IMG/VR virus record: IMGVR_UViG_3300020178_000002
Coordinates: 248,001 to 312,000 of that record
Length of the DNA stretch: 64,000 nt
Direction: 5' to 3' (one strand)
Shown: positions 30,340 to 61,377 of the stretch, piece after piece
Numbering within the stretch: position 1 is the stretch's first letter
Layout of the letters: the number at the start of each line of letters is the position of its first letter
Notes under the pieces: model-generated
What the model saw: the letters and a program-made list of their open reading frames with translations, nothing else
What the model was told of the DNA's origin: nothing
Databases searched by the model: none
Translations under genes and position numbers: made by a program

Positions 30340-33300
30340 TTAAGAGACTAATACCCCATAGTCTTCTTTTGCATAAACAACTGCATCGTTAAGTCCAGAT
30401 CCATTCCAATCAGTACTAAAGTCAGTGTTTAATACGAAAGCATCTGCTACAGAACCATAATCTATGGTTTCAATGACTCTACCTAAAACGATCAAATCAG
30501 CAACAGCATTGACATTTGACTGTGTTGGTGTGCTAAGGAGAATAAGCTCTCCAGGGCTTGTTCCTACATCGTAGTCTGTTGAAGTGCCTAAAACAGTAGG
30601 AACGTATTTATTAAGACCATTAGCAGTGGTGTATCTTAAAACTTGCTTATCGGTATCAGGTGCTGCATTAACATCAGTTAAGTTGTTTGAGCTTACTTCC
30701 ACGCTTACATCAATGACATCACCTGCATCGTTATTTGCAAATGTTAAAGAATCTACACCTGTTGCAGTTCCTCCAGCAAGTGCAGTCGCAACTACATCTC
30801 TTGCTTTCTCATCGAAATTCTCAGCAACAAATTCTCCTGCATTAGAATCCCAAACAAGAACTTCATCTCCTGTAAATGCACCTGTGTTGATATTAACATC
30901 AGAATGTGTGGAAATAGATCCGAGATTAGTTAGATTCTCACCACTTATAGCACCTAGCTTACCATTCCCATCTGTAATAACTACTTTACCTGCATCTGCT
31001 ACACCACCTGTAATAGTTGTGTCTAGGGTAGATACATTACCTAGTCCAAGTGTGGTTCTTTGTGCAGTGTTATCAGCATCATCCAGTAACGCTAGACCTG
31101 CTGCTGTTATTGTTGAATTTGTTAAAGCCCCAGCCCCTGTTGTATGGAGTAGCTGATTATTCCCTAAAGGATTAAGGTCTGCTATTTCTTGAAGCAGGGT
31201 GTCTTGAGCTTGGACATCTGTTCCTATTGCTAAACCAAGAGTAGTTCTCTGTGCAGTATTATCAGCATCATCTAGTAATGCAAGACCTGCTGCTGTTATT
31301 GTGGCAGTTGTTAAAGCTCCAGCCCCTGTTGTATGGAAGAGTTTGTTATTTCCAGCAGGGTTTAGGTCAGCAAACTCTTGAAGTAGCGTATCTTGAGCTT
31401 GGACATCAGTTCCAATCTCAAGGTCTAAAGTTGCTTTTACTTGTGCCTTGGTTTGTGCAACAAAGTTATTCCCATCGCCTACAATGAAGTTTCCATCTGT
31501 ATTGGCTAATCCAGAGATGTCAGAAAGATTCCCTGTTAGTTGGATAGTTAATTCACCATTTGCATCGTCATAAGTAGTTGAAATACCTGTATCGTGGTTG
31601 TTGTTAACTAACAATCCACCTGCAATGTCTTGAACAAGTTCTGTTGTGTCTGTTAGGTCATTGACAGTAAGACCACGAACCCAAGCTGCTGTTACAATCT
31701 GGGTTGCATTTGCATTTTGAGCAGGTGCAGTGATTGTACCTGTGCCTGTTACAGTTATGTTTTTATCTAAAGAGACATTCTCACCAAGAATAATTTCTTC
31801 TGCTGTATTAGTTGTGACGAAAGTAAGGTATCCATTGCCACCCTCTGTAATATTAAGGGCAGATGGCTGATTGTCTGCAAGAGAAATCTCTGCTACAGAC
31901 AAAGAACCACCAAGAGTTAAGTTGCCATTGTTTAATAAAGGTATGTTCGCTGAGTTGGAAAGGTCTGTGGTAGAAATAGTTCTGTTACTGAAAGCACCTA
32001 GTGCATCACTTACAATAAAGTGGTTAAGGGCAGGATTTGCAATACTAACATCTCCTAGATCATCAAGGTTTGATCCAGCAGAAAGAAAATCTCCTGTGTT
32101 ATTCTGGGAAGCTGTACCCAGAGCTAATGCGGTGATAGAATCGCTCACCTGTCTGTCTGTATATGCGGTACTTGCTATTTTAGTGCTGTTATCACTTGCA
32201 GCCTGTGTTGTTACTTGCACTGTGCCTGTGAAAGTTTGATTTGCATTTAAGAGAGATATGTTCGCTGTATCAGATAAATCACTACTAGAGATAGTTCTAT
32301 TACTGAAAGCACCCAGAGCGTCACTTACAATAAAGTGATTGAGAGCAGGGTTTGCAATACTAACATCACCGAGATCATCAAGGTTTGATCCAGCAGCGAG
32401 AAAGTCTCCTACATTAGAGGTAGAAGCAGTTCCTAGCCCCAAGTCTCCAATTTCAGCAACTACAAAAGCTGTTGTTGCTATCTGGGTTGTATTTGTATTA
32501 ACAACAGCAGTAGGTGCTTCTGGAACGCCTGTAAATGTCGGTCCTGCAAGTCTGGCTACAGTATTATCCACAGAAGCTGTCATTGTGTTGGCAGCATCAT
32601 TATAAGTGAATGTTATATCGGTGTGGGCAGACCCATTTGTTATGAACAGTTCATTTACAGCGTCTTGTGCTGATTCTGTAGGTGCTTGAGCTACAAACGT
32701 ACTTACTCCATCCCAAACTAGAGTATGTCCAGCTTGAGCGTTTGAAGCGTCTATGTCTGAGATATTTGCTGAACTTAATGCAACACTCTCAAAAACATTA
32801 GCACCATTCGCTGTCGTGTAGATTAGTGCTTCTCCATTATTTGGAGCTAAGTTAGCGTCTACATCAGACAAGTGAGAGAGCTGTGTTATGTTCCCCCCTA
32901 CTTGGGCAACTACTGCTCTAACAAAGCTGGCAGTTGCAACCTCTCTACCAACAGAGTTATTGGCAGGGTTGTTTGCAGTGATTACAGCACCTGTTAAATC
33001 TATATCTCCTGATACAGTCAGATCTCCTGTAATAGTTTGGTTGGCATTTAAGAAAGCAATGTTGTTCGAGTCTGACAAGTTTGTTGTAGATAAAGCAACA
33101 TTATCAAAGGTGGCATTAACAGCATCATATATTAAAGCCTCACCAGCTTGTGGGTTTGCTAGTGTGACTAGTGAGGATGCTAAGAAATCTCCTACATTAG
33201 AGGTAGAAGCAGTTCCAAGTCCTGATTCAAAGTCAGCTATTTCAGCGACAACAAAAGCTGTTGTTGCTAATTGAGTTGTATTTGAATTAACAGCAGCAGT

Positions 33301-36300
33301 AGGTGCTGTGGGAACACCTGTTAGAGCAGGGTTGTTCAGTCTTGCAACAGTTGCATCTACAGAGTAGTCTATTCTATTATTAATGTCATCATAAGTAACA
33401 GTAATATCAGTCTGTTGACCTGCATTAATCATGCTACCGATAGCATCTTGTACTTCTTCAACTATTGTATTGTCCCCAACAATGAGGCTGCCTTGAGCGT
33501 TAAAGACAAGAATTTTATCTTGAGCTTTATTGGCTGTACTGACATCATTCAAGTCATTAATGGATGAAGTAGTTTTTATTAAACTTGTTCCATCACTAAG
33601 TTGGCTTGAAGAAAGCTGTGCATTCTCGAATACATTGTTTCCTGTATAAACCAAAACTTGATTAGTTAAAGGAGTTCCTGCTTGAGGATCATTTGTGATT
33701 GTCACATCACTCAAGCTATTAATAGCAGATCCTGTTGCTAAGAAGTCACCTGTATCATTTGTAACAGCAGTTCCAAATCCAAGAGTGACTCTTGCATTTA
33801 CTTGATCTAATGCTAATGAAGTCCTTGCTTGTGCTGGTGTTTTTAGAACAAGGTCATTCCCATCACCAGCTAAGAAGTTGTCTGCTGTGGGTTGTGCAAT
33901 AGCAGATATTTCTTCCAGCCTAGCATTTTGAGCTTGGACATCAGTCCCAATCTCAAGATTTAGGTGTGCAACTGGGTCAGCAGAGGCGATTAAATCCCTA
34001 CCTTGTTGAGTTATGTCAGCAGTAGCATAGGTATTAGCACCTGTTGTGTAGATTATTTTATTGGCTGCTTGAGGATTTAACCCAGCAATAGATACAAGAG
34101 ATGCTTGTAGAGTTGCAGTAACATTTCCATCATTTACTCCACCATCATCAGTATAGGCGAAAGTAATGCCTGCACTGTGGTTTGCATGAGCAAACTGAGC
34201 ACCTACAACGTCTTGGATAGATTCTGTAGATCCTGTGAAATCAGAGACTGTTAAAGCTCTAACCCAAGCAGAAGTAACAATATGATTATCATTTGCATTA
34301 GCAGCAGGTGCTAGGATAGTACCTGTACTTGTGATAGACAGACTTCCTGTTGCTGAGATATTTCCTTGAGAAGAAACATTTCCTAGTCTTAGGTTTGCAT
34401 CTGAGATACCTGCCACAGCACTAAAGTCTGTTGTGTTTACATCAACAGCACCACTGTGTAATGCTAGTCTGAAGGTATCATCTCCTTCATCCCAGAAGAT
34501 AACTGCATCATCTAAGTCCCCTCTTGTTAAAAGAAAACCTAGATCATTAGCATTGTTTCCTACAAAACCATTATTAAGTTCAATTACACTATCTGCTACT
34601 GCCAAGTTATTTTGGTTATTGATATTTTGAACACCATTAACAGTTAAGTTTTGAACAGTGATGTCACCACCTGTAGTTAGACTTGTGTTTCCAAAGTCAA
34701 TAGTTCCTGTACTATCTACAATAGAACCAGAACTAATATCCATTGTGCCATCTATTTCAACGGGCTTTAATAATCTAATTTCTTCAGCACCATCTGTGGT
34801 GTCTACCTCAATGTAAGAAACATTATTGGTAGACTCTTCAACTTTAAGGGCTATCGGCTGGTTGTCTGTAATGTTGAGCTGTACTAAGTTACCCTTTGCA
34901 GAGATTGTATTAAGCTCAATGTCATCAACATTTCCAATATTTTGGTTATTGAGGTTTGCTCCAGAAGATAAAGTTGAGATTCCATTTACAGAGAAGTTTC
35001 CTGTTACACCTGTATTTCCATTTAGAGCATTAACAACAAAGGCATTGTTACCTACAATAAGATCTCCACCTATGTTTATTTGATTAACTCCGAAATCAAT
35101 ACCTCCATTGTTAGAGGTTGTGATTGAGTTATCTGCAAGAACAAGATTTCCAATAGAAGACCCAGATTGTGCAGTAAATACTTTTCCAAATATTATACTT
35201 TCTGTGTTGTCTGTTGTATTGAAGGTTAGGTAAGCATTAGCTCCTTCAGCTACAACAAGAGCTGCTCCATTATTGTCTGGGATAGATATGGAAGAAGTGG
35301 ATAGTGAATTTACTGTCGTAGCCCCTGCATTTAGAGTTCCTGTTGTACTTATATTTATAGCACTGAAAGAAACATCTCCACCTGCACTGTTTATTGTTGC
35401 ATTGTTTCCATTAGGTGTAATGGAAAGCGAGACAGCATCTGTTAATGGGTTGATTACATTCAAACCACCATCCATAGAAGAGAGTCCATCTACATCTAAA
35501 GTACCAAGAACTGCTGTGTTTCCTGTCAACCCATCCACAGTAAATAGGTTGCTTACATTGATTCCACCATTTGGTTTTAAGACGTTTGTTAAAACTAGCT
35601 CGTCATTATTGTTTAGAAGAGGTACTTTTGAGCCATTCGACAGATCTGTGGTTGATATGGTTCTATTTAAGTAATTACCAAATCCATTATTCACAAGAAA
35701 TTGACTGGGTGCATTACCGTTAAGGCTCACATCACTTAAATCATTTAACCCTGATCCACTTGCTAAGAAATCACCTGTGGCAGAAGTAGATGCAGTTCCT
35801 AAACCAAGAGCATTTCTTGCATCTTGACCAGAGAGGATTGTAAACTGATTCCCATTACCTACAATGAAGTTGTTATTTCCATTGTTAAGTCCAGCAAGGA
35901 TGTCTAGTTGTGCAGATTGGGTTTGTACATCTGTTCCAATCTCAAGACCCAAAGCTGTTCTAGCTTGTGCTGGTGTATTGAGTCCGAAGTTGAGACCATC
36001 ACTTATCAAGATATTATTTACAGCATGTCCTACATTAACAATATCTTGAAGAGAATTAGAAAGTGTGGCTCTTACCTCAGAGCTTGGGTCATCATAAGCA
36101 AAAGTAATTCCTGTACTATGGTTTAGATGACTAAACTGAGCACCTACAATATCTTCAACTTCTTCTTGGGTAAATCCTGTGTTGGGTGGGTCTTGTTGCA
36201 CAAGGACACCACCAACAACTTGTAATATCTTTCCATTAACTAGACCTGCACCAAAGTCAATGTCAGAAAGATCTCCTGCTGAAGAAGCATTTGTTAAAAG

Positions 36301-37305
36301 ATTTGCTCCATCTGATAAATCTAGGGTTGATATGATCCTATTCTCAAAGTTAGCTCCATTATGGACAATGAAATGATTATTAGCAGCACCAGCTATGGTG
36401 ACATCATTTAGATCATTGAGTTCAGATACAGAGCTTACTAATCCAGGTGCAAAAGAACCATTGTTATAAACAATAGTTTCTCCATTTTGGATATTCTGAA
36501 TACTCACATCAGAGAGAAGTCCGATGCTAGGCAATGCTGTGAGGTTTGAACCATCTAAAGCAGGCAGTGTGTTTTGAACAGTGATTTCTAAGACATTGCC
36601 AGCGTTTGTACCAAAGTCTTTTGTTGAAGCAGTTCCTAATGCTGGGGTGTCTGCTAGATCATTGTAAGAGAGTGCTTGGTTTACAAAGCTAACACCATTG
36701 TGTCTTAAAACTTCTCCATCTAAAGCACCTGCAACTACAACATCAAGTAGGTTATCAATAGAGAGATGGTCTATAGTAACACTTCCAGATATTTGAGAGT
36801 TGTCGTCATCATAAGTCCAAGTTATGCCCCCACCATCGGTAAACATTGCCCCAACAAAGTCTTCAATATTTTCTTGGGTGAACCCACCACCACCATTAGC
36901 AGGGTCTACTTGTTGGAATACTCCACCTACTGCTTGTAGTATTTTTCCATTTACAATCCCATCGCCCAAATCTACATCTGTGAGTTCACCTATAGAAGTT
37001 GCATTGAGTATGCCCAGATTTGTTCTTGCATCAGCTTGAGCTTGTACTCCGAGATCTGCAATCTCAGAGAGTACGTTATCGGCCACAAGGAAGTTTTGAG
37101 GGTTGCTTCCATTCAAGGTTTCAATCTCGATTATTGCGTCTTGAATTGCAGCATGGACTTCTGCTGGATAATCGTTTGTCCAAACAACTCCATTTCTTCG
37201 GATATTTCCAACAGAGGTAAAACCATTTTCATCAGAAGTTACTGTGAAAGTGTAAACCCCAAAAGAAGTGACTACTTCATAGTTCTTACTAATTGCATCT
37301 GCCAT
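30340..37305 (-). CDS. Long fibre protein (2321 aa)
   Basis: Repeats LxDLxDV, GTDVQAQ, ARTxLGLG, PxAPTA...TTQxATTAFV and E.VQDxVG; C-terminal DYG motifs. Confidence 0.8.
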   Translation of the reverse strand: MADAISKNYEVVTSFGVYTFTVTSDENGFTSVGNIRRNGVVWTNDYPAEVHAAIQDAIIEIETLNGSNPQNFLVADNVLSEIADLGVQAQADARTNLGILNATSIGELTDVDLGDGIVNGKILQAVGGVFQQVDPANGGGGFTQENIEDFVGAMFTDGGGITWTYDDDNSQISGSVTIDHLSIDNLLDVVVAGALDGEVLRHNGVSFVNQALSYNDLADTPALGTASTKDFGTNAGNVLEITVQNTLPALDGSNLTALPSIGLLSDVSIQNIQNGETIVYNNGSFAPGLVSSVSELNDLNDVTIAGAANNHFIVHNGANFENRIISTLDLSDGANLLTNASSAGDLSDIDFGAGLVNGKILQVVGGVLVQQDPPNTGFTQEEVEDIVGAQFSHLNHSTGITFAYDDPSSEVRATLSNSLQDIVNVGHAVNNILISDGLNFGLNTPAQARTALGLEIGTDVQTQSAQLDILAGLNNGNNNFIVGNGNQFTILSGQDARNALGLGTASTSATGDFLASGSGLNDLSDVSLNGNAPSQFLVNNGFGNYLNRTISTTDLSNGSKVPLLNNNDELVLTNVLKPNGGINVSNLFTVDGLTGNTAVLGTLDVDGLSSMDGGLNVINPLTDAVSLSITPNGNNATINSAGGDVSFSAINISTTGTLNAGATTVNSLSTSSISIPDNNGAALVVAEGANAYLTFNTTDNTESIIFGKVFTAQSGSSIGNLVLADNSITTSNNGGIDFGVNQINIGGDLIVGNNAFVVNALNGNTGVTGNFSVNGISTLSSGANLNNQNIGNVDDIELNTISAKGNLVQLNITDNQPIALKVEESTNNVSYIEVDTTDGAEEIRLLKPVEIDGTMDISSGSIVDSTGTIDFGNTSLTTGGDITVQNLTVNGVQNINNQNNLAVADSVIELNNGFVGNNANDLGFLLTRGDLDDAVIFWDEGDDTFRLALHSGAVDVNTTDFSAVAGISDANLRLGNVSSQGNISATGSLSITSTGTILAPAANANDNHIVTSAWVRALTVSDFTGSTESIQDVVGAQFAHANHSAGITFAYTDDGGVNDGNVTATLQASLVSIAGLNPQAANKIIYTTGANTYATADITQQGRDLIASADPVAHLNLEIGTDVQAQNARLEEISAIAQPTADNFLAGDGNDLVLKTPAQARTSLALDQVNARVTLGFGTAVTNDTGDFLATGSAINSLSDVTITNDPQAGTPLTNQVLVYTGNNVFENAQLSSSQLSDGTSLIKTTSSINDLNDVSTANKAQDKILVFNAQGSLIVGDNTIVEEVQDAIGSMINAGQQTDITVTYDDINNRIDYSVDATVARLNNPALTGVPTAPTAAVNSNTTQLATTAFVVAEIADFESGLGTASTSNVGDFLASSLVTLANPQAGEALIYDAVNATFDNVALSTTNLSDSNNIAFLNANQTITGDLTVSGDIDLTGAVITANNPANNSVGREVATASFVRAVVAQVGGNITQLSHLSDVDANLAPNNGEALIYTTANGANVFESVALSSANISDIDASNAQAGHTLVWDGVSTFVAQAPTESAQDAVNELFITNGSAHTDITFTYNDAANTMTASVDNTVARLAGPTFTGVPEAPTAVVNTNTTQIATTAFVVAEIGDLGLGTASTSNVGDFLAAGSNLDDLGDVSIANPALNHFIVSDALGAFSNRTISSSDLSDTANISLLNANQTFTGTVQVTTQAASDNSTKIASTAYTDRQVSDSITALALGTASQNNTGDFLSAGSNLDDLGDVSIANPALNHFIVSDALGAFSNRTISTTDLSNSANIPLLNNGNLTLGGSLSVAEISLADNQPSALNITEGGNGYLTFVTTNTAEEIILGENVSLDKNITVTGTGTITAPAQNANATQIVTAAWVRGLTVNDLTDTTELVQDIAGGLLVNNNHDTGISTTYDDANGELTIQLTGNLSDISGLANTDGNFIVGDGNNFVAQTKAQVKATLDLEIGTDVQAQDTLLQEFADLNPAGNNKLFHTTGAGALTTATITAAGLALLDDADNTAQRTTLGLAIGTDVQAQDTLLQEIADLNPLGNNQLLHTTGAGALTNSTITAAGLALLDDADNTAQRTTLGLGNVSTLDTTITGGVADAGKVVITDGNGKLGAISGENLTNLGSISTHSDVNINTGAFTGDEVLVWDSNAGEFVAENFDEKARDVVATALAGGTATGVDSLTFANNDAGDVIDVSVEVSSNNLTDVNAAPDTDKQVLRYTTANGLNKYVPTVLGTSTDYDVGTSPGELILLSTPTQSNVNAVADLIVLGRVIETIDYGSVADAFVLNTDFSTDWNGSGLNDAVVYAKEDYGVLVS

Positions 37306-37401: not shown

Positions 37402-38358
37402 ATGAATAAGGTAAGAGCTTCTTTTCTAAACCTGGTAGAGGAAAAAGGCGGTTTTGTGTGCCATCACGCACACTTTGATAAATCTCATTTAATAACCCCA
37501 GAGATTCTGAGAAAAAGTCAATCTAGCCTTCAAGAAAAGTGGTACATATACAGAGACTTGAAAGAATCTTACACTAGGGAAGATCTAAGACTTCGTATGG
37601 TTCGATGTATTGAAAAAATGCGATCTCAAGGTGTTAACAAATGTAAAACCTTCATAGATGCAGACCAGATTGTAGGTTTGACTCCTATGGAAGTTGCTGT
37701 TGAGCTAAAGAAAGAGTACTCAGCTAAAGGCTTTGATCTGCTTCTGGCAGTTCAGCCTCTTGAGGGAGTTCTAAATCCTTTTGCTAGAGAGATTTTTGTT
37801 AAAGCCTGTGGAATGGCTGACGTTGTTGGAGGTCTTCCAGATAGAGACAAAGAGCCACTATCTCATATGGACTTTATTTTAAGCCTAGCAAAAGATTTAG
37901 GCAAAGACCTTGATGTTCATGTTGGTCAAAACAACATACCCTCTGAACAAGAATCCGAGATGGTTGTTGATAAAGTTAAAGAGCATAACATGGAGGGTAG
38001 AGTGAACTTGGTTCATGCAATCTCTTTATCTTGCCAAACCAAAAGCAAGAGGAAAGAGGTTATACAAAAGATTAAAGATACCAATACAGGTGTGATTGTG
38101 TGCCCCTCTGCTGCAATAAGTATGAAGCAACAATCTAATGTTTCCGCCCCTATCCATAATTCCATAGCTCCTGTCTTAGAAATGCTTGAAGCTGGTGTAG
38201 ATGTAATGTTAGGTGTGGATAACATACATGACCTATTCATGCCTTTGGTTGATGGAGACCTATGGTTTGAGTGTAGGCTGATGATGGAAGCAATAAGATG
38301 CTATGACTTGGAACTGATTTCTAAAATAGCTTCAAATAAAAGAGGTTTTAATGATTAA
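37402..38358 (+). CDS. Metal-dependent amidohydrolase, cytosine deaminase-like
   Basis: HHAHFDK, DVHV, VHAIS, IVCP and GVDNIHD metal-ligand pattern of the CodA family; exact substrate uncertain. Confidence 0.75.
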   Translation: MNKVRASFLNLVEEKGGFVCHHAHFDKSHLITPEILRKSQSSLQEKWYIYRDLKESYTREDLRLRMVRCIEKMRSQGVNKCKTFIDADQIVGLTPMEVAVELKKEYSAKGFDLLLAVQPLEGVLNPFAREIFVKACGMADVVGGLPDRDKEPLSHMDFILSLAKDLGKDLDVHVGQNNIPSEQESEMVVDKVKEHNMEGRVNLVHAISLSCQTKSKRKEVIQKIKDTNTGVIVCPSAAISMKQQSNVSAPIHNSIAPVLEMLEAGVDVMLGVDNIHDLFMPLVDGDLWFECRLMMEAIRCYDLELISKIASNKRGFND

Positions 38359-39592
38359 AAGATATGAACACCCTAAGATTAAAAAGATCTTCTCTCCTGA
38401 ACAGAGGCTTTCTTATTTTGTAGACATCGAAAGATACGCATCTCTTTATCATGGAGTTGAAATACCAGATATAAACATAGATTCCCTGCTTTGTAGTATG
38501 GATGAATGTGAAAAGATCACGAAGCATGAGACAGTTGCTTTCTTACAAGCTCTTTCTTATCAGTTAGATGATATTTCAAATCTTCACTTTGGTATGACAA
38601 GCTCTGATGTTTTAGATACCTGTCTTTCTTTACAAATCAAAGAAGCATCTAGTGTTTTGGAAGATGAGATAAAGATTCTTCTCACTAGCCTTAAGACTTT
38701 CTGCTTAAAGAATAAGAATACTCTTATGGTAGGTAGATCTCATGGTAAAGCAGGTGAATTGATCAGCTTAGGGTTTTCTTTTCTTTCTTACTATAAAGAA
38801 TGGGAGAGGAACTTAGATAGACTCACTCATGCTAGAGAAGAAGTCTCTTATGGGATGGTTTCTGGTCCTATGGGTAACTTTTCAAACATTAATAGAGAGA
38901 AAGAAGACTTTATTTGCTCTAGATTAGGGATCAAACCAGAGCCTGTTTCAACTCAAGTTATTCCAAGAGATAGACATTCCTATCTTATGTGTGTACTAGG
39001 CATCATTGGAGCATCTCTCGAAAGATTATCCACACACATTAGAAACTTGAGTCAGTCTGGCATTGAAGAAATTTCTGAATCCTTTTCCGTTTCCCAAACA
39101 GGGAGTTCGGCTATGCCACATAAGAAGAACCCTATCTTATCAGAAAATGTGACAGGACTTGCCAGACTGTTAAAAAGTTATGTCTCTCCCTCTTTAGATA
39201 ATGTTTCCCTCTGGTTTGAAAGGGATATGAGTCATTCTTCTGTTGAGAGGGTGACAATAGAAGATGCGTTTCACTTATCATGCTTTGCAGTCAAAAGAAT
39301 GACTTTTGTCATTGATAGGCTTTCTGTTCATAAAGAGTCTTTGGATAAAAACATTGAAAGAGAAGGCAATCACATTTATTCTCACTCTGTTCTTTGCCAT
39401 CTTATGAAAAAAGGTGTAGACAGACATGAGGCATATCGCTTCATTCAAAAGGTCACTCAGGGAAACAAGGACTTATTTAAAGAATTAGAGACTTCCTATC
39501 CCGAGCATAAGGTAGGACAAGTGGTATTATTTAATGAATGTGTGTCAAACATAGATCATATTTTTAGGAATGTATTTGGAGATTCTAAATGA
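38351..39592 (+). CDS. purB: Adenylosuccinate lyase
   Basis: HFGMTSSDVLDT, GRSHG, STQVIPRDRH, GSSAMPHKKNP and ERDMSHSSVER. Confidence 0.95.
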   Translation: MIKRYEHPKIKKIFSPEQRLSYFVDIERYASLYHGVEIPDINIDSLLCSMDECEKITKHETVAFLQALSYQLDDISNLHFGMTSSDVLDTCLSLQIKEASSVLEDEIKILLTSLKTFCLKNKNTLMVGRSHGKAGELISLGFSFLSYYKEWERNLDRLTHAREEVSYGMVSGPMGNFSNINREKEDFICSRLGIKPEPVSTQVIPRDRHSYLMCVLGIIGASLERLSTHIRNLSQSGIEEISESFSVSQTGSSAMPHKKNPILSENVTGLARLLKSYVSPSLDNVSLWFERDMSHSSVERVTIEDAFHLSCFAVKRMTFVIDRLSVHKESLDKNIEREGNHIYSHSVLCHLMKKGVDRHEAYRFIQKVTQGNKDLFKELETSYPEHKVGQVVLFNECVSNIDHIFRNVFGDSK

Positions 39593-40806
39593 GTACAACG
39601 GCAGTTATAGGTGGTCAATGGGGTGATGAGGGTAAAGGTAAGATTGTTGACTTTCTTTCAGAAGGTGCAGACTATTGTGTTCGCTTTCAAGGTGGCAGTA
39701 ATGCAGGTCATACTATCACAGTAAACGATCAAGTGTATAAGCTCAGATTATTGCCCTCAGGAGTCCTTAGAGGTTCAACGGGTGTTCTTGGTGCTGGTAT
39801 GGTTATAAACCTTGATGTGCTTCAATCTGAAGTCTCTTATCTACAAGAAAGAGGGATAGAGCCAAAGTTCTTTATTGATCATAGAGCACATCTTGTCACT
39901 CCAGAGCATATTTCCAATGATGTTCTTCGAGAGAAAGAATCTGGAAACAGAATTGGCACTACAAGAAATGGTATTGGCCTTTGTTATGAAGATAAAGCAA
40001 GAAGAACAGGTCTTCGTGCAGGAGATCTACTAACAGACTTTGATTCTAAGGTAGATGCCTTTCTTAAGTTTTATGATAACAGCCCTCGTGTTAAGTTAGG
40101 TCTGGTGAAAGTTTTGAATGAGTGGAAAGACACTTGGTCTAAATACATTCGTACAGACCTCACAGATGTTCTATATAGAGCAATGCATATAGAAGATAAG
40201 GAAGTTGTTATTGAAGGGGCACAGGGGACTCTCTTGGATGTTTCACATGGAACATATCCTTTCGTTACATCTTCTCATACAATAGCCCCAAGCATTGCAG
40301 CAGGAGTAGGTGCTTCTTTACCAAGAGACTATAACTGCATTGGTGTTTTTAAAGCATACTGCACTAGAGTTGGCAAAGGGGGCTTCCCATCAGAAGATTT
40401 TACAGAAGATGGAGATGCTTTACAGAGAATCGGTAAAGAGGTAGGTGTTGTCACAAAGAGAGTTAGAAGATGTGGCTGGCTTAACCTTGATGATATGATT
40501 TATGCGAACCAGCTTAATGGCTTCACTTCAATTGTTTTAACAAAAGTGGATGTCTTAGATGGATTCTCTAAAGTTAAAGTAATGTATAAGGGTGATTTGC
40601 AAACTCTAGATGGTTGGGCAGGTTCAGGAGATGCCAAAACTTGGCTTGAGCTACCAGAGAATCTTATGAAGTTTATTGATTACATTCAAGAGAAAACAGG
40701 TGTTTCAGTTACCATGATTTCTAATGGTCCAGATCGCAAGGACACAATAATGCACCCTTTTTTAACTATGCCAAAACTTGAAACCACACCTAGCATGGAG
40801 CTTTAA
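39589..40806 (+). CDS. purA: Adenylosuccinate synthetase
   Basis: [38 protein letters not shown] and RRCGW. Confidence 0.96.
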
Positions 40807-40807
40807 T

Positions 40808-41860
40808 ATGAGAATTGAAACAGAGTCGAAGCTGGACTTCAAAGATGTATTGTTTAAGCCAAAGAGATCAACTCTGACCTCTCGAAAAGAAGTAGATCTA
40901 AATAGGGATTTCAAGTTCCCTCATAGTAATCGTGTCTGGAGTGGTGTTCCTATTGTAGCAGCCAACATGGACACTGTTGGAACTATTGAAGCAGGTAAGG
41001 TTCTTTCTCAGAACAATATGCTAACTTGTCTCCATAAACATTACACTGAAGATGAGTATGTAGACCTCTATAATTGGGTATATGCGAACCAAGGCTCTAC
41101 TTATGCTTCCTATTGGGCTTACTCTATGGGTATTTCAGATGAGGAGTTTGCTAGATTAGAATCAGTCCAGAAGAAAACTTCTGGTAAGATTACTACAATC
41201 TGTATTGATGTCGCTAATGGATATACTGAGAGGTTCATTAACTTTGTTTCTAAGGTTAGAAACAGATATCCAGAAGCGATTATTATTGCAGGTAATGTCG
41301 TGACTGCTGAAATAACAGAGCAGCTTATCCTAGCAGGTGCAGACATAGTAAAAGTTGGGATAGGGTCAGGGAGCGTTTGTACGACTCGTATTCAAGCTGG
41401 TGTAGGCTATCCTCAGTTGAGTGCAGTTATTGAGTGTGCAGATGCAGCACATGGTTTGAATGGTCGGATTATGTCTGATGGTGGTTGTACTTGTCCTGGA
41501 GATGTAGCTAAGGCATTTGGTGGTGGGGCTGACTTTGTAATGCTGGGTGGTATGCTTGCAGGTCATGTTGAGAACCTTAAGCTAGATGACCAAGGAAATG
41601 CTTTATTTTATGGTATGTCATCAGATACAGCTATGGACAAGTATCATGGTGGTGTTAACGAGTATCGCTCATCAGAGGGTAGGACAGTATCTCTTGACCA
41701 AAGAGGCAATATAAAAGACACCATTCAAGACATACTTGGTGGAGTTCGTTCAACTTGTACTTATATTGGTGCGAGTGAGCTTCGTGAGCTGAGTAAATGC
41801 ACGACTTTTATTCGTGTTTCTCAGCAGTACAACCCTGTGTATGAAAGCAAGACTGTTTAA
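40808..41860 (+). CDS. guaC: GMP reductase (E. coli GuaC-type)
   Basis: [24 protein letters not shown]-terminus, [31 protein letters not shown] and [14 protein letters not shown]; no CBS domains. Confidence 0.93.
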
Positions 41861-43047
41861 ACCTTAACAGGGTCTCGCTTATTCTTGTAATAAGCAGTTA
41901 TGATTTTAGCAGTGCCTGTATCCTTATCAAACTCAAAGGCTACAGTTAAGTTTTTGGTCATAGGGTCTGTCCACTCAGCTTGCATTCCATAATCTATAGC
42001 TGAGATTAAGTCTTTAGCTCTTAGGTTGTATTCATTCCTCTCGTAATACTTCTCAAGATTAAAGAAGAAAGATTTCAGTTTGTGTACTGAAATACCTCTC
42101 TGATCCATTCTGTATTGAGCATGTGAACTGATGCAGAATTGTTTAATCTTATTTAGACCACTTTTATTGCAATCTACATAGGTATAAACCTCTCTGGCTT
42201 CACTGTTAGGTATGTTCTGACCTTGTTCAAGCTTTTTGATGAGTCTTAGTTCAAGGTTGTGATCAGCGACATTTTTAATAATCCTGTCTCTGGTATGTTC
42301 TATCCCACCTGGTTTTCCTAAAGGGGGGACTAGATCAGCCTTTTTCAGAGTTTTCTTTAAATCTTGGATTTCTCTCTGGAGCGTTTTACTCAAATCCTTG
42401 ATCTCTTTCCTCGTTTTGTTCCCATCCTCCTCAATAGTTTCCTCTAATATGTAACTAGTTGAAAAAGAACCAAAGGCTTTTTTTTCTCTGCTAAGGGTTT
42501 TAATCTCTTGGTTGAGTTCGTTAAGCATCTTCGATGCAGTACGAATCTGAGAAGCTCTTTTACCTCTGCTGAAGAGTCTCTTTAAGAATCTGACCCCCTT
42601 GCCTACAAGGGAGTACTTCTCCTCGATTTTTTCTTTTAGGTCTTCAAGAACTGTTCCATACTCTTTGAGGTACTCAGGCTGACCCATTAGCTCACCTAAT
42701 TCAAAAGCAAGTTTTTCTAACTCTTTGTCTTTTTCTGCCTTAGAAATGTCTCTTTTCATTTCTTTTATCCTGAACTTACGCTCAATTTTTCGAGCTGCCT
42801 TGTCTTCTTTTTCTCTTTTAACTCCTTCAATGAACTTTCTTAGTCGGTAGTTATCTAATTTTTTTTGCTTAATGGTCGCTAAAAAGCCATCAAGTACCGA
42901 ACCATATTCTTCAACATACTCTGGTTGAGCCTGTAAGCCAACAACCTCTTTTTCTAGGTCATCTAGGTCTTTGTCATTTATTTTATCTCTAGATACACGC
43001 TTGCTGATGTCTTTTATAGCTTCTTCTCTTTCAAGTAAGGTCTGCAT
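41857..43047 (-). CDS. Modular protein: duplicated helical unit, [10 protein letters not shown] tag, C-terminal DUF4258-like putative RNase
   Basis: [15 protein letters not shown]...KIITAYY at the C-terminus; the tag module is shared with the adjacent gene. Confidence 0.55.
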
Positions 43048-43146
43048 ATCTTATCCTTTTTATTTTCCTTGGTTCTTGAGATCTCTAATCTCTTGGTTAA
43101 TTTCGTTAAGCATCTTCGATGCAGTACGAATCTGAGAAGCTCTTTT
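42517..43146. repeat. Identical 45-bp direct repeat (42517-42561 and 43102-43146) inside a shared ~70-aa module of two adjacent genes
   Basis: ttcgttaagcatcttcgatgcagtacgaatctgagaagctctttt is present twice. Confidence 0.9.
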
Positions 43147-43995
43147 CCCTTTGCTGAACATATTCTTGAGATACTTGATGCCTTTACCTACAAGTGAGTA
43201 CTTCTTCTCAATAGTTTCGTGCATTTCTTTCAGAACATTTTCATAGACTTTGGAGTATAGAGGGTCTGCCTCTAAAGCACCTACCTCAACAGCAAGTTCT
43301 TCTAAGTCTCTATCTTTTCTTGAGCTCTTAATAGCTCTGCCTAGATCCTTAATGGTGTCCTGCATCTCTTGCTCTAATATAGTGAATCCCTTATGGGGGA
43401 AGTTCATAGTGATCTCTACACTAAGACCCTCCACCATGCTTAGATTAGCACCTGTGAAATCTGGGTTTAGTAAGACAGCTTTGCTAAAACTTGCTTCTGT
43501 AAGATTACTGCCTTTGAAGTCAGCACTTCTTAGTTGAACATTAGTGAAGTCAGCACTTGTAAGATCAGCACCAGAGAAGTCAGGTTTTGTTCCTTTAGCG
43601 ATGTAGAATTGACTGCCTCTTAGGATGCTTTTTCTAAAGTCTGTTCCATTCAAGGTAGAACCACTGAGTTCAGCACTTCTGAGGTCAGCATCTTGTAGGT
43701 TTGCTTTTGTTAAATCTGCATAATCTAATTTGGCTTGTCTGAGATCTGCTGATTTCAAAGTAGCATCACTTAGATCAGCTTTGGTTAGTATTGCTCTTGC
43801 TAAGTCAGCACCTGTGAAGTCTGCTTCCATTAACTTAGAATTTTCGAGAGAAGACCCATGAAACGTAGCACCTCTCAGATCAGACTCTCTAAGGTCTATT
43901 TCTCTGAGATCCATATTTTTAAAAACACCTCTGGGAGCTTTTGTTTGTGGCATTACAGCTCTTTCGAGGTCTTCTTTTGTATAGTCTTTACTCAT
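43060..43995 (-). CDS. Pentapeptide-repeat protein with C-terminal shared tag module
   Basis: A(D/N)(L/F)xx repeats (ADFTG ADLAR AILTK ADLSD...). Confidence 0.9.
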   Translation of the reverse strand: MSKDYTKEDLERAVMPQTKAPRGVFKNMDLREIDLRESDLRGATFHGSSLENSKLMEADFTGADLARAILTKADLSDATLKSADLRQAKLDYADLTKANLQDADLRSAELSGSTLNGTDFRKSILRGSQFYIAKGTKPDFSGADLTSADFTNVQLRSADFKGSNLTEASFSKAVLLNPDFTGANLSMVEGLSVEITMNFPHKGFTILEQEMQDTIKDLGRAIKSSRKDRDLEELAVEVGALEADPLYSKVYENVLKEMHETIEKKYSLVGKGIKYLKNMFSKGKRASQIRTASKMLNEINQEIRDLKNQGK

Positions 43996-44040: not shown

Positions 44041-44078
44041 AAAAAAAGCCCCACTTCCCAAATGGAAAGCAGGGCTTT
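44041..44078 (-). terminator. Intrinsic terminator
   Basis: AAAGCCC...GGGCTTT hairpin with a T run on the minus strand. Confidence 0.55.
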
Positions 44079-44542: not shown

Positions 44543-45253
44543 ATGAAAATAATCTTATCTCCACCCTTCAGTAATTTGGCTTTAACAAACCTTTATCCTA
44601 ACACCACAAGAATCATTGGCACATACACTCTAAATAAGAGAAGGGGTTTGTGGAGAGTTCTTACTACCCTTAAGAAAACAAACAGGGGCTGGGTAAATAA
44701 TGTAGGCTTAAGGAATGGTGGTATTACGACAGTCCCAAACAAACCTTTCATAGTCTCTATTGCAGAGCTTGAGTCAGGTGATTGGTTACAGATGCTGAAT
44801 CATTTATCTACTTTGGATAATATTCTGGGGGTAGAGCTTAATATCTCTTGCCCTAATGCTCAGGTTAAAGGGGTGGGAGAAGATCTTCTGCGTAGCTTCA
44901 ATGATACTTTTAATAATGTATTTGTTAAAGTTCCTCATAACTACCCAGAGCGTCACCTTTTTAGCTTGATAGAGTGTGGTGCAAAGGTTATTCATATTTC
45001 TAATACGAAGAAGACAGAGGTTGGTTCTCTCTCTGGTGTGGAGTTGATACAAAAAAACCTCCAAACCATTAAAACAGTGAAGAAGCATTATCCTCATGTT
45101 AAAGTGGTTGGAGGTGGTGGTATATACAACTTAGAATCAGCTAAACAGTATATAGAAGCAGGTGCAGACTACATTTCTTTGTCTACAAGTTTGCTTAGAC
45201 CTTTTCGGACATATTTCCTAATTAAAGGATTACATACCTTCTTAGCTGACTGA
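44543..45253 (+). CDS. pyrD: Compact dihydroorotate dehydrogenase-like flavoprotein (family 1)
   Basis: NNVGLRNGG, ELNISCPN, HISNT, GSLSG, VVGGGGI and AGADYISL; only 236 aa. Confidence 0.75.
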   Translation: MKIILSPPFSNLALTNLYPNTTRIIGTYTLNKRRGLWRVLTTLKKTNRGWVNNVGLRNGGITTVPNKPFIVSIAELESGDWLQMLNHLSTLDNILGVELNISCPNAQVKGVGEDLLRSFNDTFNNVFVKVPHNYPERHLFSLIECGAKVIHISNTKKTEVGSLSGVELIQKNLQTIKTVKKHYPHVKVVGGGGIYNLESAKQYIEAGADYISLSTSLLRPFRTYFLIKGLHTFLAD

Positions 45254-45509
45254 AGCTTAAGAAGTATGCTTCTTGAGTTCCTCTTTCGAGAACTTCAACT
45301 ATTGGCTTTTCATATTCAGTGTTGTATAAGATCGAAGCCCTGACATTCTGACCTCTGTTTCCTCTGTTCTGACTTTTGACTATTACAGGCCAGTTGTACT
45401 CTTCTTTGTGTTCAGAGTAAGGAGTTGCTTCATATACTCTTTTAGCTGAGGGCTTTCCAAGTATTCTTATTAGAGTATACACTCTATCTTCTTTTAGACT
45501 GTCTAACAT
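45222..45509 (-). CDS. Hypothetical protein
   Basis: 95-aa ORF lying antisense between pyrD and pyrF-pyrE. Confidence 0.45.
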   Translation of the reverse strand: MLDSLKEDRVYTLIRILGKPSAKRVYEATPYSEHKEEYNWPVIVKSQNRGNRGQNVRASILYNTEYEKPIVEVLERGTQEAYFLSFSQLRRYVIL

Positions 45510-45525
45510 CTAGGTGTCCTTTCGT

Positions 45526-46638
45526 ATGATTAAAAAAGTATGTGTTGGTTTAGATCTTCCTATTAATAGTTCTTTAGAAGACTATATAAAAATTATTAAC
45601 GAGGTTGGCTCTACAAGCTACAAAGTCAACCCTGCCTTTGTATCGCCCCATATAATGCCATTGCTTGCTTCTGAACTCAATATAAGGGGCTTCTTTTGGA
45701 TATATGATGGTAAGCTGGGTGATGTTCCTCATACAAATGAGAGATATGCAGATTATGTATTCAATCAGCTAGGTGCAAATGCAGTCACCTTAAATCCTTT
45801 TGTTGGTCTGGAGGCACTTGAGCCTTTCTTTCAATATGAAGATAGATACTCTTTTGTTCTTTGTAAAACTACCAACTCTGGAGATAAAAAAGCTCAGTCT
45901 GCTATGTATACAGACATAATTTCTTTAGCTTCCGAGAGAAGCAATGTAGGTATTGTCTACTCGTCACTAGATTCTGAGGGTTTGAGAGCAGTATCAGAAG
46001 GCAACTTTTTGATACTTGCACCTGGAGTGGGCTCACAAGGTGGCTCTGCTGCAGTAGATGAGTTGAATATTCTTTATACAGTAAGTAGGACTATAATAAA
46101 TTCACCTGACCCCCGTGAGACTTATCTTGAAATCAAAGGTGGTGTTGAAGCTATTCTCTTAGAGAGTTTGAGGTCTAGGGGTTTCATTAAAGAAGGTCAG
46201 TTTACACTTTCAAGTGGTCTTTCTTCTAACTACTATATTGACTTAAGGTGTCTTTCTTCTGACATAGACTTCTACCAAGAGGTATGTTTGCTTTTGTCTA
46301 GGCAAATAAAAACCCCTGATATACTAGGTGTCGAGAGTGGAAGCATATCTCTAGCTTCTTCTCTTGCTTGTCTTCTAGATAAACCTTTTGGTTTTGTTAG
46401 AAAGACTGCAAAGTCACATGGTACATCAAGGGTTGTTGAGGGTATCTCAGAGGGAGAAGCAACAGTTGTAGATGATGTTTTAACAACTGGTAGTAGTCTT
46501 ATAAAGGCTGTTTTAAATGCTAGAGCCTCTGGTATCTATGTCAGTGAAGTTTTAGTTGTAATAGAAAGAGTTGGTTATGGTGGTAGAGAAGCTCTTGAGA
46601 GTTATGGTATTAAAGTCAATTCTTTAGCGAGACTTTAG
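45526..46638 (+). CDS. pyrFE: Fused OMP decarboxylase + orotate phosphoribosyltransferase (PyrF-PyrE)
   Basis: OMPDC motifs DGKLGDVPHT, AVTLNPFVG and LAPGVGSQGG; OPRT motifs FTLSSG..SNYYIDLR, VRKxxKxHG and VVDDVLTTGSS. Start is 45514 or 45526. Confidence 0.9.
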   Translation: MIKKVCVGLDLPINSSLEDYIKIINEVGSTSYKVNPAFVSPHIMPLLASELNIRGFFWIYDGKLGDVPHTNERYADYVFNQLGANAVTLNPFVGLEALEPFFQYEDRYSFVLCKTTNSGDKKAQSAMYTDIISLASERSNVGIVYSSLDSEGLRAVSEGNFLILAPGVGSQGGSAAVDELNILYTVSRTIINSPDPRETYLEIKGGVEAILLESLRSRGFIKEGQFTLSSGLSSNYYIDLRCLSSDIDFYQEVCLLLSRQIKTPDILGVESGSISLASSLACLLDKPFGFVRKTAKSHGTSRVVEGISEGEATVVDDVLTTGSSLIKAVLNARASGIYVSEVLVVIERVGYGGREALESYGIKVNSLARL

Positions 46639-47382: not shown

Positions 47383-47775
47383 ATGCCTGTTCGTACTATA
47401 GTAGTTATTTGCTTATCTTTATCTTATCTGATGTTATTTGGTTTCATTGCTAGAGAACCCCAAGAGAGGTTTGTTCTATATGCTGTGCCAGAGTCTAAAG
47501 GTTGTATTTACCCAATAAACGAGATAAAGGAGACCAAAGTAGAGCTAAGGCATGTCATTCCCTATACGAAGATACATACTTGTAAATATGATGATTCCAA
47601 AAGACTCATTAGTGTTAAGACATATAACTTTGAGATAGGCTATCAAATGAAAAAGCCCACCCATGAAATAATCTATCATTGGGTGGGCACTAGGTTGAGT
47701 AAGGTCTCTTTTCGAGAGGCTTCTCATGGTCAGGGCGAAGTTGATGTTAGAGTCCTTGAGTTTTCAAAGAAATAA
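47383..47775 (+). CDS. Hypothetical membrane-anchored protein
   Basis: N-terminal TM segment MPVRTIVVICLSLSYLMLFGFI. Confidence 0.5.
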   Translation: MPVRTIVVICLSLSYLMLFGFIAREPQERFVLYAVPESKGCIYPINEIKETKVELRHVIPYTKIHTCKYDDSKRLISVKTYNFEIGYQMKKPTHEIIYHWVGTRLSKVSFREASHGQGEVDVRVLEFSKK

Positions 47776-48346
47776 AACCAATGATTGGAAACTTAGCCTG
47801 ACCTTGTTTTCTAAGGCTTTGAGGGATATTAGCAAATCTAAAGTCAGCACCCTCAATGATTGCACCTGTGAAATCACAGCTAGAAACATCAGCTCCTGTG
47901 AAATCAGCCCCTCGTAAATCAGCGTTTACAAAAGATACCTCTTTGAGAACACTATCCGAGAAATCAGCCCCTCTGAGGTCTGATCTATAAAAGCTGGCTT
48001 TCTCTGCTTCTGTCCCTGCAAAATTAGCTCCGATAAGGGTTGCTTGAGCGAAGCTCACCTTTTCTAGCTTTGCAAACTCTAAATCTAAGCTTACTCCATA
48101 AGACTCATTTAAGTTGACCTTAGAGAGTTCAGCTTCGCTAAAGGTAGCGTTTGTTAGTTCGCAATTTTTCATAACAGAGTCTTTAATGACCAGCCCTGAA
48201 ATGTTTGAGTTTACGAACTGGCAATCTGTTAGATTGCATTCATAGATTCCGACATCAATTCCAGAAGAAAGTGTAAAGTCAGAGCCTGTTAAATCCTCAT
48301 TTGAAGAGGACTCTAAAATTGTATTTGTGTTATCTTGGAATCTCAT
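47747..48346 (-). CDS. Pentapeptide-repeat protein
   Basis: ANFAG, SDLRG, ADFSD, ADLRG and ADFTG repeats. Confidence 0.88.
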   Translation of the reverse strand: MRFQDNTNTILESSSNEDLTGSDFTLSSGIDVGIYECNLTDCQFVNSNISGLVIKDSVMKNCELTNATFSEAELSKVNLNESYGVSLDLEFAKLEKVSFAQATLIGANFAGTEAEKASFYRSDLRGADFSDSVLKEVSFVNADLRGADFTGADVSSCDFTGAIIEGADFRFANIPQSLRKQGQAKFPIIGFISLKTQGL

Positions 48347-48347
48347 A

Positions 48348-48482
48348 TTAGCCCCCAAACCCTACGGGTGTCATTGCAATGCAATATCCCAAGGTAGCTA
48401 GAGCAACCCAGATTAACAGAAGAAGTGAAATTCCTAGTTGAGTGAGGAATGATTTAATCCCGTTTGCAAAAATCTTGTACAT
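48348..48482 (-). CDS. Small single-TM protein (44 aa), not in ORF track
   Basis: MYKIFANGIKSFLTQLGISLLLLIWVALATLGYCIAMTPVGFGG*; AGGAG RBS. Confidence 0.5.
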   Translation of the reverse strand: MYKIFANGIKSFLTQLGISLLLLIWVALATLGYCIAMTPVGFGG

Positions 48483-56734: not shown

Positions 56735-57495
56735 TTGAGTATTTTAAAGTAATGATAACCCCACCTGTAGAAGAGCCTATTATCTTAGTAGGTAAGCCCT
56801 CTGAGATTGATTATACCAGCTTCATGGCTTTAGAGGGGGCTTCCATCGTTCCCATATATAACCCATCTGTACATGGGATCATTTTACTTGGAGAACCCAC
56901 AGAGGAAGAATCGAGTTTAATCAATGAGATTCTACTTCCAGGTGCTCATGTTATTCTTATCCCAGAAGATATTGGATATAAGGGTGTTATCTCCCTTGAA
57001 GACAAGGGTGGTTTAGAAGTTAGAGATGCCATTTTTGTAGCAGACGAGAACTCAGAGTTCTGCTATACTTCTAAAGCAAGTAGAGGTGAGCGAGAAGCAG
57101 GTCTTTCTAACTTCGATGAGAAAGAGGGTCATGGTACATTTAGGGCAACTAGAGATCAAGCTATGCTAACAGGTTCTGGTAATGTTAGGGACAACAAGCG
57201 TAAGAATATCCATCCTACTGTTAAGCCAATAGAGATAATGGAATGGTGTGCTAGAGATATAGAACCTAGCTCTACTGTTGTAGACCCTTTTATGGGGTCT
57301 GGAACAACAGGTATCGCTATGTCTAAACTACACCATGACTTTGTAGGGATAGAGCTTAATCCTGAATATGCTAAAATATGTGAGGCGAGGATGAAGTATT
57401 GGAAACCTGTGGACACAAAGATTATTTCAGAGAACCCTGTCGAAGAAGAAGACCAACAGGTCTTCACAGGGCAAGTTTCTCTATTTGACTTTTAG
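56722..57495 (+). CDS. DNA methyltransferase C-terminal (SAM-binding) subunit
   Basis: FCYTSKASxxERxxGL, NIHPTVKP, VVDPFMGSGTTG and FVGIELNPEY. Confidence 0.85.
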   Translation: MEDMIEYFKVMITPPVEEPIILVGKPSEIDYTSFMALEGASIVPIYNPSVHGIILLGEPTEEESSLINEILLPGAHVILIPEDIGYKGVISLEDKGGLEVRDAIFVADENSEFCYTSKASRGEREAGLSNFDEKEGHGTFRATRDQAMLTGSGNVRDNKRKNIHPTVKPIEIMEWCARDIEPSSTVVDPFMGSGTTGIAMSKLHHDFVGIELNPEYAKICEARMKYWKPVDTKIISENPVEEEDQQVFTGQVSLFDF

Positions 57496-59102: not shown

Positions 59103-59176
59103 GGGCCTTTAGCTCAGTTGGTTAGAGCACCCGACTCATAATCGGGCGGTCCTGGGTTCAAGCCCCAGAGGGCCCA
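59103..59176 (+). tRNA. tRNA with CAT anticodon, probably tRNA-Ile2 (reads ATA after lysidine modification); CCA not encoded
   Basis: Full cloverleaf; anticodon arm CCCGA-CTCATAA-TCGGG; body resembles bacterial Ile2 tRNAs. Elongator Met is not excluded. Confidence 0.85.
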
Positions 59177-59182
59177 CTACAA

Positions 59183-59216
59183 AGGAAGCATCTTTATGAG
59201 GGCTTCCTTTTTTTTA
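59183..59216 (+). terminator. Intrinsic terminator
   Basis: AGGAAGC...GCTTCCT hairpin followed by a T run. Confidence 0.65.
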
Positions 59217-59232
59217 TCTTGAGGGATGTCAC

Positions 59233-59672: not shown

Positions 59673-59713
59673 AAAAACTCCTTGTTTTAGTCTCGGCTTT
59701 GTATAATAACTAT

Positions 59714-59987: not shown

Positions 59988-59993
59988 ATTTTT

Positions 59994-60066: not shown

Positions 60067-60071
60067 TTTTT

Positions 60072-60143: not shown

Positions 60144-60190
60144 CTTTGAATTTTTGCTAAAGTCATCACGCTGGTTCAAGGATAATAATA

Positions 60191-61219: not shown

Positions 61220-61221
61220 CT

Positions 61222-61376: not shown

Positions 61377-61377
61377 C

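Follow-up and report, generated by a model that had tools for sequence, protein, structure and literature searches.

Pentapeptide-repeat proteins of known structure, among them QnrB1, MfpA and AlbG, dimerise through their C-terminal helices. The DUF4258 family has been placed among the BECR ribonucleases (RNases), where it overlaps Ntox49 (PMC11980606; bioRxiv 10.64898/2026.08.28.747851), and Ntox49 is listed for caudoviruses and for MuF head proteins (PMC3482391). Here we describe a locus in which a pentapeptide-repeat protein and a protein with a DUF4258-like tip, the products of the adjacent genes g311 and g396 (proteins P0002 and P0001 respectively), share a conserved helical module that recurs behind unrelated N-terminal parts in a group of phages. 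The two genes lie in a stretch of 64,000 nucleotides, referred to below as the window, that corresponds to bases 248001-312000 of IMG/VR virus record IMGVR_UViG_3300020178_000002.

The record is 312,136 bp long, has direct terminal repeats and is rated complete. Its source is an uncultured jumbo phage, as follows from the size of this complete record, from GenBank relatives that are all uncultured huge phages and from the metagenome runs; the public runs in which the stretch occurs are salt-marsh, estuary and marine metagenomes. The only relatives found in GenBank with the terminase and a conserved 330-aa protein are LR745208.1 and LR756511.1, both unannotated uncultured huge phages, and neither g311 nor g396 was matched in the GenBank phage collection at the DNA or the protein level.

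The module shared by g311 and g396

A first-pass annotation of this DNA had noticed a module of about 70 residues common to the two adjacent genes, C-terminal in one and internal in the other, with its helical part duplicated at the N-terminus of the latter and with 45 identical bp between the copies. Each of these observations was borne out except for the length, since the module proves to be about 105 residues long and to comprise four helices (Table 1). By BLASTP, residues 94-190 of P0001 align without gaps to residues 215-311 of P0002, with 56 of 97 positions identical (58 %; E 6e-33). The g311 protein carries everything that defines the module family, whereas the g396 copy is internal and is accompanied by a half-copy, also visible by BLASTP (P0001 3-62 against P0002 205-265, E 3e-6), that is without the basic helix 4.

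The family is marked by the signature KYSxVGKG and by a further 11-residue motif. Mean column identity across the module is 70 %, and the polar residues R81, S83, Q84 and R86 are invariant. AlphaFold2, applied to 25 family members, predicts four helices at module positions 2-20, 24-39, 41-61 and 67-105, with a predicted local distance difference test score (pLDDT) of 86.9 and a predicted template modelling score (pTM) of 0.73; in the full-length model of the g396 protein the module helices fall at residues 107-121, 124-146 and 152-191. Helices 1-3 of the g311 module have a net charge of -5 and the long, basic helix 4 one of +8, and this charge split, together with the conservation and the invariant polar residues, points to a shared binding surface. 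No family in Pfam, PHROGs or NCBIfam covers the module. Fold searches with it found nothing convincing in the PDB (Foldseek, best E 0.76) or in BFVD (best E 0.83), a VIA-wide search gave a best Z of 7.8, which is too low to mean anything for helical bundles, and shape and feature searches of the ESM Atlas returned nothing distinctive.

At the DNA level the g311 and g396 modules are 70 % identical overall. The 45-bp identical run falls in the most conserved stretch of the module and is a plausible recombination joint. The same codon is used at 41 of the 55 positions with identical residues, and a run of 18 successive codons is shared (permutation p ~0.02), which is suggestive, without being decisive, of gene conversion or of such a joint.

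An exhaustive profile search of 1.84 billion representative proteins gave 42 hits at E <= 1e-3, 36 of them at <= 1e-10. Two of the 42, P0170 and P0180, were judged spurious, being repeat or coiled-coil proteins, and the genuine hits come from this phage group; the module family is therefore both real and narrow, and the module does occur outside this gene pair. In nearly every member it ends 0-3 residues from the C-terminus. The N-terminal parts that precede it are unrelated across about 46 protein clusters, and in 24 proteins the likeness to g396 or g311 is confined to it. When 48 members were scanned against Pfam, pentapeptide repeats were found in 23 and DUF4258 in a single protein, itself one of the pentapeptide members; nine of the 48 are module-only proteins of 170 residues or fewer, and the remaining N-terminal parts belong to no family. 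The existence of module-only proteins speaks against its being just a tag.

A related phage represented by a 177-kb fragment (G001, 57 % complete) has at least nine module copies, five of them in a tandem block that sits between two genes adjacent in our genome, in a region running into the tail sheath gene. Judged from these sequences the module constitutes a multigene family in the phage group, with up to at least nine genes per genome, often in tandem. Two members, P0016 and P0019, are identical at 131 of 133 positions ahead of the module and at 70 of 96 inside it, where they have two different tail subtypes, and the module tail of P0153 is mosaic; recombination therefore swaps the module, and parts of the module, between genes. 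The first-pass annotation had spoken of a shuffled targeting cassette, and the shuffling and portability are upheld by the roughly 46 clusters and by the visible recombination. The targeting role is not, as no match to a fold or family assigns the module a function, the leader described below is a better candidate for such a role, and module-only proteins exist.

We note that a search for further copies in the genome itself did yield one, a weak fourth copy of the helical half. It lies at 14549-15028 (+) in the numbering of this phage's genome (G000; equivalent to L004:1306-1785), in a 159-aa open reading frame (ORF) with module helices 1-3 only (E 1e-5) followed by unrelated sequence, and adjoins a 214-aa pentapeptide gene.

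The C-terminal domain of g396

The assignment of the end of the 396-aa protein to a DUF4258-type domain, initially made from the sequence alone, is supported by profile searches. Pfam DUF4258 (PF14076) matches residues 306-386 with 24.5 bits when the whole protein is scanned, below the cut-off of 25, and with 26.7 bits (E 6.9e-6, profile positions 1-70 of 71) when residues 230-396 are scanned in isolation; the profile matches three of five family members. The Ntox49 signature residues 'H, [KR]' (PMC3482391) are present in the HAxxRM motif of g396. In an alignment of 78 homologues H309, Q311, M314, D315 and R317 are invariant and R313 is present in 77, and the motif DLxPPLGxPGG that opens the domain family is equally constrained, with D238, L239, P241, L243, G244, P246, G247 and G248 invariant in all 78. 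The full-length model (pLDDT 88.6, pTM 0.47) exceeds a pLDDT of 90 over residues 249-396 and falls below 50 over residues 234-242, part of this motif; with a pTM of this order the relative placement of the g396 domains is not fixed by the model. Look-alikes in the Atlas are DUF4258, BrnT, RelE and ParE, with a TM-score of 0.61 to the DUF4258 and BrnT clusters, and sequence searches of the PDB with the C-terminal domain gave nothing useful. On the DUF4258 match, the conserved residues, the fold look-alikes and the placement in the literature, the C-terminal domain is therefore probably a DUF4258/Ntox49-type BECR domain and an RNase.

A word search limited to residues 236-396 recovered two orthologues only, and a profile built from five members recovered 291 relatives, 92-292 aa long. 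All four of the genomic contexts examined for DUF4258 relatives are phage-like, with inteins and homing endonucleases. No toxin-antitoxin partner or conserved small partner was found beside the homologues examined, and in agreement with the earlier reading no antitoxin-like gene adjoins g396, which is flanked upstream by the pentapeptide gene g311 and downstream by a convergent gene resembling guanosine monophosphate (GMP) reductase. A Pfam scan of P0001 found no MuF domain at E values up to 1. In the wider family the sequence RVAxR(Y/F)L precedes DLxPPLGxPGG, and the motif of this region is met again behind the domain or at the termini of proteins (P0028, P0032, P0044 and P0053), as though it were a marker of domain junctions.

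The N-terminal leader and the origin of g396

A second conserved element of this phage is a leader of about 22 residues, with the approximate consensus QQIRSLEMRIARLEKEAG, that is near-identical in 31 ORFs of the genome and stands at the extreme N-terminus in 27 of the 31. Leader-bearing genes are found in the window at 63226-63981 (+) and 18731-19345 (+), and those outside it include G000 90020-92425, 183199-184802 and 225808-226434, one of which encodes a pentapeptide protein; nine form a tandem block ahead of the tail sheath region (G000 149987-158523). When nine proteins of this structural block, six leader-bearing and three conserved neighbours, were compared with PHROGs, only a 1603-aa neighbour was matched, as tail sheath. 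The leader is also found on many genes of related phages and on stand-alone DUF4258 homologues: in L013 a stand-alone DUF4258 gene lies among six leader-bearing genes, and in P0026 leader, pentapeptide repeats and module are combined in one protein. The last 20 residues of the module (RTASQMLNQLNKEIxDLKKE, positions 86-105) can be aligned with the leader sequence RTAAQQIRSLEMRIARLEKE, a likeness that is not significant (hhalign P 0.04, probability 1.3 %). By analogy with head proteins of T4 and phiKZ/SPN3US we infer that the leader is likely to be a virion address or a propeptide. Its sequence does not agree consistently with the cleavage consensus of T4 (L/I-x-E) or with that of phiKZ (S/A/G-x-E), and a search for a T4-type prohead protease (PF03420) found no match, an uninformative result as the control genomes were also without one.

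The g396 protein consists, in order, of a half-module, a linker helix, the full module, a degenerate leader and the DUF4258 domain, an architecture that is unchanged in its orthologues P0003 (99 % identity) and P0004 (86 %). The closest homologues of residues 236-396 are stand-alone proteins of 186-196 aa (55-62 % identity) in which a short leader, canonical in P0100, is found directly ahead of DLxPPLGxPGG and then DUF4258. The linker of g396 has a pLDDT below 50 at residues 195-206 and forms a predicted helix at 209-236, with the degenerate leader at about residues 222-237. Because the DUF4258 domain is a stand-alone gene in related phages, g396 is better read as a module-only gene fused to a downstream leader-bearing DUF4258 gene than as an effector assembled round a central module. 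At the syntenic site of G001 there are one module-only gene and one leader-bearing gene, and no DUF4258 gene. On a 317-kb phage contig the protein P0166 joins pentapeptide repeats, module and DUF4258 seamlessly and is a second, independent fusion; a third mosaic, P0181, has what is left of a module tail joined directly to a leader, with further repeats behind it. g396, P0166, P0181 and the G001 site thus show that genes ending in the module and genes starting with the leader are often neighbours and fuse repeatedly.

Function of the module

We favour a reading in which the module serves as a docking or assembly domain that binds a single shared partner, and taken jointly with the fusion and RNase readings above we would give it an even chance of being correct. 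The module would tie its varied N-terminal companions (DNA-mimic-like pentapeptide proteins and an RNase) to the shared partner or to each other, and the partner is probably a complex that the phage makes, perhaps within the virion. The DUF4258 domain, brought into g396 by fusion of a module-only gene with a downstream gene of the order leader-DLxPPLGxPGG-DUF4258, would be an active RNase acting on host RNA. We propose that an antitoxin would be dispensable, either owing to the lytic lifestyle of the phage or since the enzyme stays latent before its processing or delivery. Docking or assembly fits best because the module is conserved across unrelated N-terminal parts, has a free C-terminus, occurs in many copies and in module-only proteins, and co-occurs with the leader.

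Several observations weigh against this interpretation. The Pfam score of the DUF4258 match is barely over the cut-off; the best Foldseek matches of the C-terminal domain, to PfiT, HigB2 and RelE, are weak (E 0.2-2), and the VIA matches of residues 299-392, with Z 5.1 to CdiA-CT and 4.6-5.0 to RelE-type toxins including HigB2, are weak when taken alone. No member of DUF4258 has been characterized or assayed to date (PMC11980606). As to the module, frequent gene conversion could also explain its high conservation, no partner is suggested by the fold searches of PDB, BFVD, VIA and Atlas, and g311 and g396 sit among nucleotide-metabolism genes rather than among structural genes. A complex prediction for the DUF4258 domain with the module scored 0.00, which gives no verdict and is evidence neither for nor against binding.

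One alternative, which seems to us unlikely, is that the module is a virion-loading signal that binds the prohead interior, the portal or the scaffold, so that the pentapeptide proteins and the RNase are packed and then ejected with the DNA. In its favour, MuF head proteins of caudoviruses are known to carry Ntox49/DUF4258 toxins as cargo at their C-terminus (PMC3482391, PMC5576092), the tandem modules of G001 are set within a block of leader-bearing genes ahead of the tail sheath gene, one terminus of the module is always free, and its last 20 residues bear the faint likeness to the leader noted above. However, the separate N-terminal leader on 31 proteins fits the role of an address better, and leader and module are found together in P0026 and P0157, so that they are not simple alternatives; moreover, module-only proteins would be tags without cargo, and the genome region that holds g311 and g396 is a metabolic one.

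There is similarly a minor chance that the module serves self-association, forming dimers or oligomers of pentapeptide proteins with no external partner in the manner of the Qnr/MfpA C-terminal helix. Half of the members are pentapeptide proteins, a class generally known for dimerisation of this kind, the acidic helices 1-3 could pair with the basic helix 4 between subunits, and half-modules without helix 4 exist. Against this, the module, with ~105 residues, greatly exceeds a dimerisation helix in size and in conservation, it is also found on non-pentapeptide and minimal proteins, AlphaFold2 gives a closed monomeric bundle, and among the dozen or so pentapeptide genes of the genome g311 is the only one that has it.

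More doubtful still is an extension in which the leader and the C-terminal module are two combinable addresses that select effectors, DNA-mimic pentapeptide proteins and a BECR RNase among them, for a virion-borne or early-acting complex delivered into the host; since the last module helix faintly resembles the leader, the two might even bind the same receptor. Finally, it is very improbable that the module is a cis-acting inhibitor of the DUF4258 RNase, a fused antitoxin or immunity domain that would explain the lack of an adjacent antitoxin gene, for although two independent fusions place it directly before DUF4258, and although DUF4258 loci have the antitoxin gene first and the toxin gene second, with toxin-antitoxin gene fusions on record as well (PMC11980606), a toxin domain is missing from 46 of the 48 module proteins, no module gene lies beside the stand-alone DUF4258 genes of relatives, and G001 has its nine or more modules and no DUF4258 match (in a record that is 57 % complete).

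The novelty lies in a domain family confined to one clade and in a gene fusion that recurs, rather than in any demonstrated mechanism. One clade of huge phages shows a combinatorial grammar, with a constant C-terminal module, varied N-terminal parts and a separate N-terminal leader, and dozens of orphan genes thereby become a system open to experiment. If the docking reading is true, the partner would reveal how DNA-mimic-like pentapeptide proteins and an RNase are deployed during infection. The DUF4258 subfamily would for the first time place this never-assayed toxin family in a biological setting. If the two-address reading is true, it would represent a new cargo-loading code for giant phage capsids.

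The g311-g396 locus

The coordinates of the locus are collected in Table 1. Because the spacer between the genes is only 12 nt long and contains an AAGGA ribosome-binding site, and because a strong terminator-like hairpin lies ahead of g311, the two form one unit, a two-gene operon with g311 first. Pfam Pentapeptide (PF00805), to which g311 clearly belongs, matches it with 129 bits (E 3.7e-38) in six stretches. Downstream, the convergent GMP-reductase-like gene and g396 have 4 bp in common. In the nearest relative, L020, the g311 orthologue is at the equivalent position, and the gene that follows the g396 orthologue P0004 (L020:7208-7852, +) combines a leader with the module's helical half (profile E 2e-8); that place is held in our phage by the GMP-reductase-like gene.

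Metatranscriptome contigs from four libraries fall on both genes, which is weak support for transcription as DNA carry-over is possible. Two salt-marsh RNA-library runs have mismatch-free pieces at 42249-42488, and in two marine RNA-library runs g311 and the 3′ half of g396 are covered by pieces with 90-98 % likeness. We note that in the marine relatives the sequence right after the g311 stop diverges from g396 (loose end at 43059), and the g311/g396 junction is therefore variable. The 5′ third of g396 (42573-42966) is covered by no contig, and the 3′ half is 98 % alike; the divergence past the g311 stop and this uncovered third suggest that the N-terminal part of g396 may vary between strains.

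Table 1. Features of the g311-g396 locus, in window coordinates
Feature	Position	Strand	Basis
g396 (P0001), fusion protein, 396 aa	41857-43047	-	ORF; BLASTP, profiles, full-length model
C-terminal alpha/beta domain, aa 249-396; DUF4258/Ntox49-like BECR core aa 299-392 (predicted)	41860-42303	-	Pfam, VIA, Atlas
DLxPPLGxPGG motif opening the C-terminal domain family, aa 238-248	42304-42336	-	78 homologues aligned
Linker of g396, aa 190-237: disordered stretch, then helix resembling a degenerate leader	42337-42480	-	Model
Full module in g396, aa 86-189, internal	42481-42792	-	Family profile A2, E 4.9e-49
45-bp identical run, g396 copy	42517-42561	-	Exact string comparison; encodes 15 residues
N-terminal half-module of g396, aa 6-62, helices 1-3	42862-43032	-	Profile A2 positions 6-62, E 2e-13
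g311 (P0002), pentapeptide-repeat protein ending in the module, 311 aa	43060-43995	-	ORF; Pfam Pentapeptide E 3.7e-38
Full module in g311, aa 207-309, extreme C-terminus	43069-43377	-	Family profile A2, E 1.5e-46
45-bp identical run, g311 copy	43102-43146	-	Exact string comparison
Pentapeptide-repeat beta-helix of g311, ~aa 24-190	43426-43926	-	Pfam PF00805, PF13599, PF13576 stretches
Intrinsic-terminator-like hairpin, 15-bp stem and T run, closing the gene upstream of g311	44045-44078	-	Sequence

Other features of the window

The window also contains a terminase gene with an intein, two ORFs encoding proteins of about 2,300 aa, six tRNA genes and several pentapeptide-repeat genes. The terminase is encoded at 4721-7843 (-) by a 1040-aa ORF in which the intein has a LAGLIDADG domain; the flanks match terminase large subunits, with 62 % identity to the uncultured phage LR745208.1. 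The two giant ORFs adjoin each other at 23249-30283 (-) and 30340-37305 (-) and encode 2344 and 2321 aa respectively, and an Mtd_N (major tropism determinant N-terminal) domain at the start of the first suggests a fibre or receptor-binding role. A PIN-PhoH fusion protein, with PIN_4 followed by a PhoH-like ATPase, is encoded at 13298-14629 (+), and the tRNA cluster at 59103-62138 (+) comprises Met, Thr, Lys, Arg-TCT, Arg-CCT and Glu.

Nucleotide-metabolism genes flank g311 and g396 at 37402-41860 (+) and 44543-46638 (+). Those near g396 resemble adenylosuccinate lyase, adenylosuccinate synthetase and GMP reductase and were read from sequence motifs; then come a dihydroorotate dehydrogenase-like gene and a fusion of orotidine monophosphate (OMP) decarboxylase and phosphoribosyltransferase, both backed by recorded Pfam hits on the L020 orthologues. 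The pentapeptide-repeat genes, about a dozen across the phage genome, include those at window positions 47747-48358 (-) and 57492-58769 (-); the full module is found in g311 only, and one other (G000 225808-226434) has the leader instead.

Comparison with known systems

The C-terminal domain of g396 resembles DUF4258/Ntox49 in that residues 306-386 cover nearly the full profile, including H-x-x-x-R-M, and in that its predicted core aligns with RelE, HigB2, BrnT-type and CdiA-CT toxins. It differs in having about 60 additional N-terminal residues that begin with DLxPPLGxPGG, in belonging to a subfamily of about 300 proteins, in having no antitoxin or immunity neighbour and in being, on our reading, fused behind a module-only protein. 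The adjacent, co-transcribed antitoxin that characterizes type II toxin-antitoxin systems has no counterpart at g396.

Residues 24-190 of g311 form a canonical pentapeptide beta-helix like those of Qnr, MfpA and HetL, none of which has a counterpart of its C-terminal module, and the NCBIfam equivalogs score far below their cut-offs on g311 (Qnr 60.3 bits against 240, MfpA 51.6 against 360, HetL likewise). To our knowledge the module has no sequence or fold relation to the dockerins of cellulosomal enzymes, and we know of no cohesin-like partner for it; the likeness would be one of logic only, a small conserved C-terminal module on many proteins of one genome with a presumed common receptor. 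The capsid-targeting sequence of T4 and the propeptides of phiKZ and SPN3US head ejection proteins (PMC5694885, PMC7411985) are, like the leader on 31 proteins, short terminal addresses, whereas the module is C-terminal, about 105 aa long and, by prediction, folded.

The closest parallels in organization are the MuF polymorphic toxins (PMC5576092) and polymorphic toxin systems in general (PMC3482391). Unlike the MuF toxins, which belong to temperate phages, g396 has neither a MuF domain nor an immunity gene, and it resides in a large and apparently lytic genome. The family described here is similar to these systems in its combination of conserved and varied domains, in recombination and in a putative BECR RNase cargo, but it has the constant part at the C-terminus and the variable parts at the N-terminus, opposite to the order in polymorphic toxins.

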